This document shows positions 19,752 to 23,564 of a stretch of DNA of 64,000 nucleotides, piece after piece. How positions within the stretch are numbered: the stretch's first letter is position 1; each line of letters begins with the position of its first letter. The notes below the pieces were generated by a model. It saw only the letters and a list, made by a program, of their open reading frames with translations, had not been told where the DNA came from and did not search any database. The position numbers and the translations under genes are program-made. The stretch lies in the sequence record PP942979.1; one strand, 5' to 3'.

Positions 19752-20174
19752 TTACTGTGCCCTCATTGCAAACGTAATTGATTGTTTGTCTTCGAGCTTA
19801 GGACAACGCCATGTGATTACACACACGTAGGTCTGCTCGTATTGATCGCTCATGGTGCAGGCTGTCTTGACGCTGGTTACGTCCTGCGTGAGACCGTTGT
19901 ATGGGTCTTCTAGGGCAAGACGCATGTACGTTGCAATCCAGTCAGCCGTTGTTTGATCGAACGGCTCAAACAGATACTGATATACATCGGCACCGAAGTT
20001 CTCACGCCATTTGCGAGACTTCTTACGCGTACCGATTACCATCAGAATCTTCTGGACGATGCTGTCCATGTTCTGCACGTTATCACGCGGTTCAAGTTGA
20101 ATCCACGCATTAATATCACAATAGATGCGCTCGCTAATCGGCACATCTATCAGACGAACTCCGATTCCAGCCAT
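19752..20174 (-). CDS. Baseplate wedge protein (gp25/gpW-like)
   Basis: I..VIGTRK.SR.WRENFGAD...YLFEPFD matches the gp25 family pattern. Confidence 0.85.
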   Translation of the reverse strand: MAGIGVRLIDVPISERIYCDINAWIQLEPRDNVQNMDSIVQKILMVIGTRKKSRKWRENFGADVYQYLFEPFDQTTADWIATYMRLALEDPYNGLTQDVTSVKTACTMSDQYEQTYVCVITWRCPKLEDKQSITFAMRAQ

Positions 20175-20464
20175 TAGCCAAATCTCACATTAGAACTACC
20201 ACTCGAAGCTGTGTCGCCGCAACTGTTAGCGTCACCAGCACGTTGCGCAGGCTTACCGTTGACACGCACACTAGAACTTGAAGTAGCTTTCCCGACATGA
20301 GGAGGCTTCTTTGGTTTCCAGTGAGGACGATAACTATCGCCTTGACGAACACTCCCTTTTCCATTCACAAGCACGTTAGAAGATGCCTGAGCAGGGACAA
20401 CAGGAAAATAACCATTGTGTCCAGTAGACAGATCTGTGCCTAAACGAATAGCTTTCTGACCCAT
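20174..20464 (-). CDS. PAAR-domain spike tip protein
   Basis: AIRLG.D.STGH, V.VNGK...R.GD, H..H and CGD motifs of PAAR proteins. Confidence 0.9.
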   Translation of the reverse strand: MGQKAIRLGTDLSTGHNGYFPVVPAQASSNVLVNGKGSVRQGDSYRPHWKPKKPPHVGKATSSSSVRVNGKPAQRAGDANSCGDTASSGSSNVRFG

Positions 20465-20487
20465 GTTAATTCTCCTCTGTTAGGCAC

Positions 20488-20495
20488 AAATTAGC
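20488..20495 (-). promoter_or_regulatory. Putative phage late promoter GCTAATTT
   Basis: Just downstream of a terminator, ~24 nt before the PAAR ATG. Confidence 0.65.
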
Positions 20496-20508
20496 TTGTT
20501 ATGCAGTA

Positions 20509-20544
20509 GAAACGAAAACGGGCAACCCGAAGGCCGCCCGTTTT
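20509..20544 (-). terminator. Rho-independent terminator with UUCG loop, closing the putative ncRNA
   Basis: Minus strand AAAACGGGCGGCC-UUCG-GGUUGCCCGUUUU followed by CGUUUC. Confidence 0.85.
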
Positions 20545-21760
20545 CTTTGCTTGGATTTGTGTCGCTTAACTCCCTCACACCCGAAGCGAGTGCTCGGTAG
20601 CCGAAGCCACTAAGCCGGAGTTAATGGCCGAGAGTGAAGCCGCACGGCGCGGCAACAGCATGTGACTCTCGGGACCAGATAGCAAGCGACCAAGCATCGC
20701 AATTGCTATCAACGACACGAAGAACAAAATCATGTTTGCTCCTGTGTCTCTACTGTAAGGTAAAACATTTGCAAATGTCGATCAAGTTACTTCAAGTTGC
20801 CCTTCGCCCAACTTCACTAGGGTTTCAACTCTCTTTCTCTCGTTACCGCCTGGGTTGCGGAGACCGCGCACAAGAACAACGCTTCAACGATACGTGGGCA
20901 GGAAGACACGTACCGCATTCACATCGCTCAAGCGAAGGAGGTTACCCATCGGTGATCTGCGGTGGTTAATACACTCTTTAACAATCGCTCTTGTTGTGCA
21001 TTAGATCGTGGTAGGAACGCGATTGACCGCTAACAAGTCCTATACGATATTTCACTACCCGAGAATGGGTATCAGCTATGGCAGCACGTCAACAGCAGCG
21101 GGGCAGCGGACACACTCCATTAAGCATTGTTAAGGGCAATGCTCAACAGGCTGTGAACAGCTTTGACCAAATGCAGAGTCGCTCGTCGCCCGACTTCACT
21201 TGAGTATCTCGTCTGCACTCTTTTACTCCCTGAATACCGTACAAGGAAGACGGCACCCATGAGGGTCTGCGGATGTTTATCACATTAAGACTCTAGCCAA
21301 CTTAATCCCGTACGCAGTGTGTTGAGTCGTCCGCTGGATGACACACTACATACCCCTCACGTTCGTGCATAAGTGGGATATAGCTGGTGGAAGGTTGTCA
21401 TGAAGATTGCATCGCCTGGAGGCTTGCCGTTCTTCCCAATGCACACACGGTGAAAGGCATATGTGCATCAGGCAGCGTAGCTGCAAACTGCTATCCCGAT
21501 AAGAGGGGCCACAACGTTGAGAGTACGTTCCGCCTGTCTTACGCGCCTAGAGGCAACTGCCGTGCCATGTCTGAAAAGAATGAAAAACGCTGGGCCTTGT
21601 GAGCGTCAGCAGCAGAGCAGCAGTCTATCGCGTGGGTGCTGGGGTTAATCCTCACGATTACAGAGCATCACACTCTAACCAGCTGGAGGCTTGCCTACTG
21701 TGGAACGCAGCGACAAGTTTACAGTCAAACAACGTCCGCTAAGTACGCCATCTGACTGGG
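20545..21760 (-). ncRNA. Putative large (~1.2 kb) structured non-coding RNA, family not recognised
   Basis: Only large gap in the window; no minus-strand ORF of 60 aa or more; more than 15 helices, several with G-U pairs that work only on the minus strand; UUCG loops; internal repeats; 3' terminator. Confidence 0.7.
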
Positions 21761-21800
21761 ACAAGTTGATATTACTATCTGCAATTTTTATTTACAGATT

Positions 21801-23564
21801 TTAGAACGCCTTACGCTCAATATTTGAATAAAGAGTATCGTAAGGTTCTGAGTACAGTTCAGGTCCGCGTTGTGCGCGAATCGTCACGTAGCCTGTGTGA
21901 CGGTTGAACGCTGTGATTTCGACAGTCGGCTGTTTAGGCTTGATAGTCGCATAAATCGGAGCATTCAACGTTGGCTCGTCTGTCTGAATCTTATTTACAG
22001 ATTGCAGTGCAGCGCCAGAGATAGCAGGCAGATTAAAACGCAGTTCAGCACGTTTCTGGCCGAATGCCGCGCGAATCATACCGTTCTCCAACTCTACACC
22101 GTTCTGCTTGAGATATGCAGCGATGCGACGTCCGATACCAGTAAGCTGATCGCGAGTGCGCGGGTCAAACGTGCCTTCGAAGCTGATTGCTTCTGCGGGC
22201 TGACGTACAGACAAATGCAGGCCTGTGTTGAAATAGCCTTCGGTCAGCAGACGCAGGATTTCTTTCACGACTTCTTTGGTGTTCGTCTTGATAGCAGCGA
22301 TACGCAGTTCAGGAACGTCCACTTTAATCGGGTCACGAAGCTCGGTCTGGTTGTCCATATAGCCGAGTGAGATATGCTTCGCATTGGCATACGTGTGTTG
22401 CAGCACACCAGTCGCGCGAATCAATACAGAGCCACCTTTTGCAAGGTCATAAAGTTCATCGCTGGTGGTTGTGCTGAACAGGTAATAGTCCGTAGGTACG
22501 GCCATGCGATTAACAGCTTCAATCGCTTTGGTTTGAGCTTCTTTGACAGTTGAGCCAAAGACTACGCGACTACGATTCGGCTGGGCAGCAGATACAGGGA
22601 AGAACGCACCATAGACAACGCTAACGTTTTTCTTAATCGGACGTTCAGACTGAATCTTCTTACCGCCAGGCAGAGAAGGTAGCTTAACGCCCACCAGCTT
22701 ACCTTTGACGATAGCTTTGTTCTCTTTGACCGGCTTGAGGCTGTCAATGAGTTTCGCCAGATCAGCACCGCTAAGAATCTTCTCCAGCGGAACAGCGAGG
22801 TTCTGCGGCAGATAGTGTTTCTTGCGGAACATATAGATAACGGTGTCTTTCTTGATCTGCACGGGCGTAGCCATGTTGCGACCAATAACACCTACCGGCT
22901 GGAACGTGTTTGCTTTGTCATCACCGATAGAGCCGAACTGCTTAGTGAACTCAGTCTGGCCGATGATGTTAGCAGCGCGTAAATGACCACGAATGATGAA
23001 CACGATTTTCGGGTCATCTTTCATGCGCAACTCGTAGCGGTCACGGTTCAGATAAACCATGCTGTACTTGTCGCCTTTCTCCAGCTCCAGATCGTACTCG
23101 TCGTTAGCGTCATCAACAACGACTTTCTTACCTACGTAGGTACCGTACGTGCGCTGGCCAGCAGACTCAGAAGCAATCTGCAATGCTTTGCCACTGTTAG
23201 ACAGGGAGGCAGCGAAGTCCATAACAGCGGGCATCAGGTCTAAAGACGATGCTACAGCGTATGGCTTGCGCTTCTCACCAAGATGCAAATGAACAGCGCT
23301 ACTGCTGGACATGAACACGGTTGTGCCTACATCTTCGTGTGTACCAGCGAAGTGCATACCGCTAATACGTTCGATGATGTTTGCGTTGAGCGATTGGAAG
23401 TTTACTTCGCTACCTGCGGTGAAGTCATAAATTTCACCGTTACGCCACGCATAGGCAACGTTGTTTGAGCTTAGACCTACGAACGCATCACCCAACTGAC
23501 GCACGGTCAACGGCATGATGCTCAGGTCACGAATAATCGAGGACTGCTTTTGAATGAGGTTCAT
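21801..23564 (-). CDS. Hypothetical protein (putative virion/internal head protein)
   Basis: 587 aa; carries a copy of the beta-rich domain shared with 36068, 44631 and 51868, and S-x-S motifs. Confidence 0.75.
   Translation of the reverse strand: MNLIQKQSSIIRDLSIMPLTVRQLGDAFVGLSSNNVAYAWRNGEIYDFTAGSEVNFQSLNANIIERISGMHFAGTHEDVGTTVFMSSSSAVHLHLGEKRKPYAVASSLDLMPAVMDFAASLSNSGKALQIASESAGQRTYGTYVGKKVVVDDANDEYDLELEKGDKYSMVYLNRDRYELRMKDDPKIVFIIRGHLRAANIIGQTEFTKQFGSIGDDKANTFQPVGVIGRNMATPVQIKKDTVIYMFRKKHYLPQNLAVPLEKILSGADLAKLIDSLKPVKENKAIVKGKLVGVKLPSLPGGKKIQSERPIKKNVSVVYGAFFPVSAAQPNRSRVVFGSTVKEAQTKAIEAVNRMAVPTDYYLFSTTTSDELYDLAKGGSVLIRATGVLQHTYANAKHISLGYMDNQTELRDPIKVDVPELRIAAIKTNTKEVVKEILRLLTEGYFNTGLHLSVRQPAEAISFEGTFDPRTRDQLTGIGRRIAAYLKQNGVELENGMIRAAFGQKRAELRFNLPAISGAALQSVNKIQTDEPTLNAPIYATIKPKQPTVEITAFNRHTGYVTIRAQRGPELYSEPYDTLYSNIERKAF

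Follow-up and report, generated by a model that had tools for sequence, protein, structure and literature searches.

Only a few large phage RNAs with an intricate fold and no known function have been described. Two phage RNAs, GOLLD and ROOL, have recently been reported to form unexpected RNA-only cages. Both are several hundred to ~1000 nt in length, with dozens of covarying helices and conserved loops, and both assemble via kissing loops and A-minor bridges; large ornate RNAs possess many contacts of the A-minor or loop-receptor type (PMC12286853). In the tandem glycine riboswitch aptamers, two homologous domains fold within one transcript, ahead of an ORF that has a Shine-Dalgarno sequence, and the phi29 pRNA, a packaging RNA of ~120-170 nt located among virion genes, multimerises by loop-loop pairing between two mutually complementary loops. 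The D-arm of tRNA has a 4-bp stem and an A-R-Y-Y-G-G loop containing the G18-G19 dinucleotide.

An RNA encoded by an Erwinia jumbo phage resembles each of these in part. GOLLD and ROOL are the nearest known kind of object, and the RNA shares with them a phage origin, a comparable length, numerous covarying helices and conserved loops, but it is a member by no tested feature: it has no Rfam sequence or structure match, does not neighbor tRNA genes, is fixed between a KMPT-N protein gene and a PAAR gene in enterobacterial jumbo phages, and has twin hairpins within an internally duplicated domain. As in the tandem glycine riboswitch, two homologous folded domains precede an ORF with a Shine-Dalgarno sequence (here 52 aa), though this RNA is much bigger, its ~450-nt 5' region lacks a counterpart, it matches no Rfam riboswitch, and its domains, of 150-200 nt, differ in their arms and allow no ligand pocket to be inferred. 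The likeness to the phi29 pRNA is that of a phage RNA among virion genes in which conserved hairpin loops would be the contact points; here, however, the loops are alike and not complementary, and an Rfam match is again lacking. The apical hairpin of one module type described below (type II) has a 4-bp stem and an AGUKGG loop, a resemblance to the tRNA D-arm that is offered as a lead only. A tRNA reading was rejected because a cloverleaf is lacking, ARAGORN detects neither tRNA nor tmRNA anywhere in the 64-kb window, and the type I loop has 8 nt; a Csr/Rsm sponge, with its many GGA loops, was rejected because there are only two modules per genome and the loop motif is WGUNGG.

The window (the whole 64,000-nt stretch of DNA that was analysed) matches Erwinia jumbo phage phB78 (PP942979.1, Alexandravirus, 262 kb) with 100% identity. 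Two repeated motifs to which an earlier note had drawn attention both sit on the minus strand, in a gap of 1336 nt that carries no annotation (Table 1). Beyond KMPT-N, the 587-aa protein encoded on one side of the gap has no recognisable domain; its PHROG is of unknown function, and sequence comparison gives no relative in the PDB. A homologous gap (1.27-1.46 kb) is present in 46 phage records at 66-100% DNA identity, and the synteny around it is retained down to ~41% identity of the 587-aa protein, with homologues of 41-51% identity in Yoloswag, SNU5, JA11/13/29/33 and fHe-Yen9-02. Gene callers place no consistent annotation within the gap across the homologous records, and no conserved ORF spans the structured-RNA region.

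Table 1. Features of the KMPT-N/PAAR gap of phage phB78 and of its flanks, in window coordinates; pairs and loops on the minus strand are given 5' to 3'.
Feature	Position	Strand	Description
587-aa protein gene	21801-23564	-	Upstream of gap; KMPT-N is the sole recognisable domain
Structured-RNA core	about 20750-21770	-	RNAalifold consensus; ends approximate; holds both modules
Repeat 1a	21683-21695	-	Core CCUCCAGC at 21689-21682 (alignments and helix list)
Repeat 1b	21416-21428	-	Tip of hypervariable hairpin; stem 21435-21432/21405-21402
Domain A	21160-21300	-	Closing helix GACC/GGUC, arm, A-rich linker, module 2a (RNAalifold)
Domain A, arm and box		-	Pyrimidine-rich loop CUUCCUUGU in arm; box AGUGAUAAACAUCCGCAG precedes domain
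Module 2a (type I)	21169-21221	-	In domain A; R1 match 21174-21216, 55.6 bits
2a outer helix	21220-21212/21177-21169	-	Plus G21208-C21181
2a bulge and inner stem	A21207-U-A21205; C21204-U-C21202 with G21184-A-G21182	-	
2a large loop	21201-21185	-	Contains the 14/15-nt repeat, 21200-21186
2a apical loop		-	GAAGUCGG; probably closed by G21199-C21188 and U21198.G21189
Domain B	20780-20985	-	Box AGUGUAUUAACCACCGCAG, AUGGG, CCUCCUUCGC, then extra ~100-nt arm
Domain B, after extra arm		-	GGCGGUAA, A-rich linker, module 2b
Module 2b (type I)	20792-20834	-	In domain B; R1 match 58.5 bits
2b outer helix and bulge	G20831-G20826 with C20799-U20794; 20825-20823	-	Bulge AAA
2b inner stem and loop	C20822-U20819 with A20803-G20800; 20818-20804	-	Loop is the 14/15-nt repeat
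2b apical loop		-	GAAGUUGG; probably closed by G20817-C20806 and U20816.G20807
Small ORF	20575-20733	-	47-53 aa among homologues (52 aa here); downstream of RNA; Shine-Dalgarno present
Compensated helices, small-ORF region	20672-20628, 20653-20639, 20609-20598, 20590-20574	-	RNAalifold helix list
Terminator-like hairpin and U tract	20514-20545	-	Intrinsic type; conserved in all homologues
PAAR spike-tip gene	20174-20464		Downstream of gap, followed by baseplate genes

There is strong support for a large structured RNA encoded in the gap on the minus strand. When 16-19 homologous gaps were aligned, the RNAalifold consensus of the core comprised 281 pairs, with 94.3% of the pair cells canonical. 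Both-side changes were found at 116 pairs, amounting to 427 cells as opposed to 130 +/- 11 in shuffled alignments and 43-78 in a control in which the 3' partners were slid. The minus strand is assigned as the RNA strand based on its folding energy (-453.9 vs -373.1 kcal/mol) and on the excess of G.U over A.C cells (632 vs 60). Rfam 15 returned zero matches for the whole window at gathering thresholds, and at E<=10 the interval 20300-22000 matched only STnc320, snoU82P and MicX, all at chance level and far below the cut-offs; among the papers searched, none describes this jumbo-phage RNA. It would seem to constitute a family of its own, so far undescribed and confined to one clade of jumbo phages that infect plant-pathogenic and enteric Enterobacterales, characterised by an ORF-poor KMPT-N/PAAR gap with bulged WGUNGG hairpin modules, of which the window has two by the covariance model of the type I module (R1). 

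In two RNA libraries, an insect metatranscriptome and a marine oligo-dT library, short contigs of 100% identity occur only inside the RNA region (20899-21355), with zero contigs in 4 kb of flanking genes. Depth was low and both libraries had been selected using this stretch itself, such that contamination or selection bias is possible and the contigs are a hint of expression only.

Both pairs of repeats had been described in the earlier note as duplicated structural modules, a description that holds for the second pair (duplicate domains, compensated stems and two copies kept beyond the genus) and fails for the first. The protein-binding sites or multimerisation contacts that the note proposed would fit the evidence. 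The 14/15-nt repeat, AGTGAAGTYGGGCGA, does occur exactly twice in the 64 kb (21186-21200 and 20804-20818), where shuffled sequences give an expectation of 0.00, and the longer match of 32 nt around it has 78% identity (21177-21208 vs 20795-20826; self-comparison E 0.005). The repeat forms the apical, best-conserved portion of a bulged hairpin of ~45 nt, one per homologous domain. This type I module is built from an outer helix, a bulge of three nucleotides (A-W-A), the stem C-Y-C(W)/(W)G-R-G and a 15-17-nt loop, within which the apical loop ends in WGUNGG; the sequence of the outer helix drifts freely with pairing retained, while the apical loop is near-invariant. In an alignment of 23 distinct module copies from 14 phages (A1), the covariation score was reached by 0 of 500 shuffles. 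One pair of the inner stem is U-A in 13 copies, C-G in nine and U-G in one, and the next is C-G in 20 with one each of A-U, U-A and U-G, leaving none unpaired. RNAalifold on the same alignment recovers the stem independently and adds invariant G-C and U.G pairs, which are predicted to close an 8-nt apical loop, GAWGUYGG.

Compensations among the homologues are seen for each of the two phB78 copies. For module 2a, the outer helix changes, for example, from TGCAGA/TCTGCA to CGTAGA/TCTACG and to GGT/ACC. For module 2b, for which the module structure is also the single-sequence minimum free energy (MFE) fold in ViennaRNA (frequency 0.73), the inner stem is found as CCC/GGG, CUC/GAG, CCA/UGG and CCUA/UAGG, and the outer helix changes from GAGUUG/CAACUU to GAAUCG/CGAUUC and GUUCUG/CAGAAC. 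A kink-turn was rejected, as the A-W-A or AGA bulge is followed by C-G pairs in both module types (CYC/GRG and CCUG/CGGG) in place of tandem sheared G.A/A.G pairs. Copy 2a does have a possible tandem GA, but on the 5' side of the bulge, and neither the 2b modules nor type II share it.

A different pairing had been proposed within the second repeat, AGUYG with a downstream CRACU, in which the single difference between the copies would be a compensated C-G to U-A swap. The local complementarity does exist in phB78 (AGUCG/CGACU and AGUUG/CAACU), but it is not a conserved pairing: across the 23 module copies from 14 phages the observed covariation value was reached by 293 of 500 shuffles. The supposed swap is not supported among the homologues, where the pair reads UG in 10 copies, UA in nine, CG in two and a mismatch in two (C:A in SNU1 and SNU17). 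The helix was rejected for its lack of covariation, these mismatches and the broken pairing in the SNU18 group. The downstream CAACU pairs instead with GAGUUG upstream of the module and not with the loop, in a helix with compensations such as GAAUUG/CAAUUC, GAAUCG/CGAUUC, GUUCUG/CAGAAC and GUACG/CGUAC. The single-sequence MFE of copy 2a in phB78 uses the AGUYG:CRACU pairing, and it was noticed because it is a thermodynamic alternative for that copy in phB78 alone.

The first repeat, an exact 13-mer on the minus strand (GGCAAGCCTCCAG), likewise occurs twice in the 64 kb (21683-21695 and 21416-21428; 0.05 expected from shuffles), with an E of 0.75 for the pair in a self-comparison of the gap. 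Sixteen of 17 phages, Y3 and SNU14 among them, carry the core of repeat 1a, CCUCCAGC, and the GCUGG that follows this core pairs with CCAGC at 21642-21638 in a covarying helix. Its 5' part, GGCAAG, falls in a variable covarying helix with a different sequence in every lineage and is specific to phB78. The motif of repeat 1b is limited to phB78, SNU30 (one mismatch) and SNU1, has decayed in SNU17, and is replaced elsewhere by unrelated short tips at that hairpin or by none. The two copies are thus not co-conserved, with 1b in a variable tip that most homologues lack. We read the 13-mer pair not as functional modules but as a likeness confined to one lineage: copy 1a is a conserved junction of single strand and helix, and 1b, in the tip of an expansion hairpin, either resembles 1a or was copied from it.

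The duplication that gave rise to the twin hairpins extends beyond them. When an HMM of domain A (21300-21150) was run with nhmmer against the domain-B region, it matched in two collinear pieces separated by the ~100-nt arm of B: domain-A positions 6-54 against the start of B, covering AGUG..AAC..CCGCAG and AUGGG (E ~0.002), and positions 44-125 against the linker and module (E 6e-7 to 1e-3). The domains also have a common plan of closing helix, pyrimidine-rich-loop arm, A-rich linker and module. Based on the collinear matches and the common plan, the duplication covers whole domains, and the 14/15-nt repeat is, on sequence comparison, the best-preserved trace of it. This is evidence that domains A and B arose by an ancient duplication and that the RNA would have grown through domain duplication.

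The two-copy arrangement is found well beyond phB78. Searches with R1 recovered exactly two modules in the 64-kb window, in the closest phage genome compared, of 264 kb and sharing 77% of the window's sampled words (G001), and in each of 17 loci of the Alexandravirus and SNU14 groups, and the module pair ranges over at least five named genera of Erwinia, Dickeya and Yersinia jumbo phages. In more distant phages, an nhmmer profile of the whole RNA gave only weak fragments, which led to a reading of those gaps and thereby to the recognition of a second, diverged form of the module (type II) in phages of the Sasquatch-, Yoloswag-, Rivs- and Salmondvirus genera, in Yersinia phage fHe-Yen9-02 and in metagenomic jumbo phages. 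In this form the outer helix is followed by the bulge AGA, the stem CCUG/CGGG and a helix of 4 bp that carries the hexaloop A-R-W-K-G-G; compensatory changes occur at all eight outer pairs, one pair of the apical helix is C-G five times and U-A five times, and the loop end WGUNGG is common to both types. Type II modules usually occur in two copies and always lie between the same two genes, though the fHe-Yen9-02 record ends before the PAAR gene.

A scan of 2.9 million viral contigs with the type II pattern returned 10 loci, at least eight of which are on jumbo-phage-sized contigs or have the same gene order (L244 is a short contig for which gene order was left aside). With a covariance model of the type II module (R2), two modules were counted in each of Yoloswag, SNU5, JA29, mg240 and mg247, two plus one weak match in mg239, one in each of JA13 and mg244, and one in fHe-Yen9-02, whose record is cut; Y3 has one type II and one type I. 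Exact-pattern scans for both types found none in 185,579 bacterial and archaeal species genomes (one per species). On metagenome contigs, the 15-nt pattern was too short, with at least 120 chance matches; filtering with covariance models left L023, a partial true homologue from the viral-contig scan, and L174, which was rejected as pattern-selected, inside an ORF and most likely chance.

Among these genomes, type I/I is found in the Alexandravirus and SNU14 groups, type II/II in most of the distant genera and a mixture in Y3, a distribution that looks like a type switch spreading to the second copy; like types within a genome would follow from both copies fitting one partner, or from gene conversion. 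Two copies are not obligatory, since JA13/JA11 and mg244 have one detectable module. The Salmondvirus phages JA13 (L227, 4277-5012) and JA29 (L228, 4277-5279) have gaps that differ by ~270 nt, with one and two type II modules, respectively; one of these phages has thus recently gained or lost a domain, a natural experiment on the need for two copies. In the 257-kb metagenomic jumbo-phage contig mg239 (L239), a third weak module-like hairpin (1593-1637; 21.5 bits with R2, 13.4 with R1) sits midway between the strong copies in a flanking-gene gap of 2.2 kb, and the RNA may be larger in this contig.

Several elements at the edges of the RNA are also retained among the homologues. The terminator-like hairpin and U tract probably mark the 3' end of the transcription unit. 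The small ORF, unannotated in phB78, is open in 19 of 19 homologous sequences. The N-terminus of its product is hydrophobic and conserved (MILFFVSLIAIAMLGRLLS), the C-terminal half varies, and covarying hairpins, in which indels are of 15 nt and in frame, overlap the 3' half of the ORF. Judged from these sequences, it may encode a genuine small membrane protein, its mRNA doubling as structured RNA. Directly after the stop codon of the 587-aa gene, a 33-nt element (AATCTGTAAATAAAAATTGCAGATAGTAATATC; 21768-21800, minus strand) is near-invariant in all homologues and contains an 8-bp hairpin, with counterparts at L225 5802-5823, L226 4329-4355 and near 4284 in L227/L228, and in Yoloswag one copy instead lies immediately upstream of the small-ORF region. 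The element could be a promoter of the phage or a hairpin with a regulatory role; TCTGTAAATA is not enriched within the window. Immediately before the small ORF, a palindrome of 14 bp without mismatch (ACATTTGCAAATGT; 20765-20778, minus strand) overlaps a sigma-70-like promoter match (20752-20781, minus strand; TCGACA, 18 nt, TACAGT); phages of the phB78/AD1 clade conserve it, those of the SNU18 clade do not. Together, these may form an operator-controlled promoter of the small ORF.

Partners for the loops were sought within the RNA, in the phage genome and in rRNA. A 6-nt Watson-Crick complement of the apical loop was found in cis in one of 17 cases compared to ~7.5 expected (uncorrected for base composition), a deficit suggesting that the loops are kept unpaired. 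Among individual candidates, UGCCUGAU (21474-21467) and UGCUUGGU (20696-20689) were rejected as mostly G.U pairing with both sides invariant, and GCCCAGC (near 21590) and UCGCUU (near 20930) for having no consistent compensation across variants, UCGCUU being unchanged where the loop becomes GGGCAA or GGACGA. The apical loops are near-invariant, with too little variation to reveal covariation with any other site. In trans, one-mismatch matches in the G001 phage genome were close to a reversed-pattern control. The idea of rRNA mimicry, which arose by eye (the module resembling 16S h35-h37 and the 5' domain the 3' end of 23S), was rejected, with local alignment scores against E. coli 16S of 26 (shuffles 23.0 +/- 2.8) and 23S of 24 (24.1 +/- 2.1). 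An E. coli 23S hairpin at ~666-705 (L230 2825-2864) shares the outline of module 2b, with an outer helix, CGAAA bulge, CCC/GGG stem and ~14-nt loop containing GUGAU, at a covariance-model score of 13.3 bits (E 0.78), which is chance level.

On balance, the favored explanation is that the twin bulged hairpins in the duplicated RNA domains contact one shared type of partner. The two hairpins would be equivalent, solvent-exposed recognition elements at which the same kind of partner is met twice. A shared partner is inferred because the loops are alike, are held while the stems drift by compensation, and are usually kept as a pair; the likeness of the copies within a genome could stem from gene conversion instead. 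The likeliest partner would, tentatively, be two subunits or copies of a protein, for example a dimer, followed by an RNA homo-oligomer using the same contact, to which a rather low probability is assigned.

It is unlikely that the loops serve only in tertiary docking in cis, each in a non-Watson-Crick receptor (A-minor or loop-receptor) of its own domain, with the repetition reflecting the domain duplication and not an external partner. The lack of a Watson-Crick complement in cis would fit such docking, as would the other elements that the homologous domains have in common (CCGCAG, AUGGG, the pyrimidine-rich loops and GGNGGUAA). However, if the loop type changed in both copies, two receptors would have to change in parallel, the arms of A and B differ strongly, with the extra ~100-nt arm in B, and the candidate local partner UCGCUU did not compensate for loop changes. 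An intermolecular role, in which the twin hairpins are the bridge elements of a symmetric RNA homo-oligomer like GOLLD, ROOL or OLE, is improbable. As with GOLLD and ROOL, a large, intricately folded phage RNA is found without a recognised protein partner, and it would present two equivalent protruding hairpins with conserved loops that lack a cis partner; but the loops lack self-complementarity and have no complementary counterpart in the same RNA, making a kissing-loop bridge unlikely, and both Rfam similarity to GOLLD/ROOL and nearby tRNA genes are missing.

Conserved single-stranded loops of 6-8 nt with GG, of a type that differs between phage genera, might also be two identical antisense seeds for host or phage mRNA, tRNA or rRNA, yet the absence of complements above the control in the G001 phage genome, 16S and 23S similarities within those of shuffles, a single 23S covariance-model match at E 0.78 and the shortness of the loops for a seed make this very improbable. 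That the repeats, known from DNA with the RNA read from sequence, are DNA-level elements (protein sites or origin-like) or chance repeats in a decaying gene is scarcely credible given the 116 compensated pairs, the predominance of G.U over A.C on the minus strand only, the covarying module stems, the lack of a conserved ORF and a motif found exactly twice in the 264-kb G001 genome.

The twin hairpin is the most conserved feature of the RNA. It provides a search signature that reaches homologues missed by sequence searches, and its loops (21197-21190 and 20815-20808) are two precise small targets, so that the function of the RNA is directly testable. It is conceivable, though doubtful, that the RNA is the scaffold of a symmetric RNP or RNA-only assembly late in infection, with the WGUNGG hairpins as its repeated contacts. 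Were this the case, the RNA would represent a new class of phage RNA machine, with a possible tie to baseplate and spike assembly or to the downstream small membrane protein.
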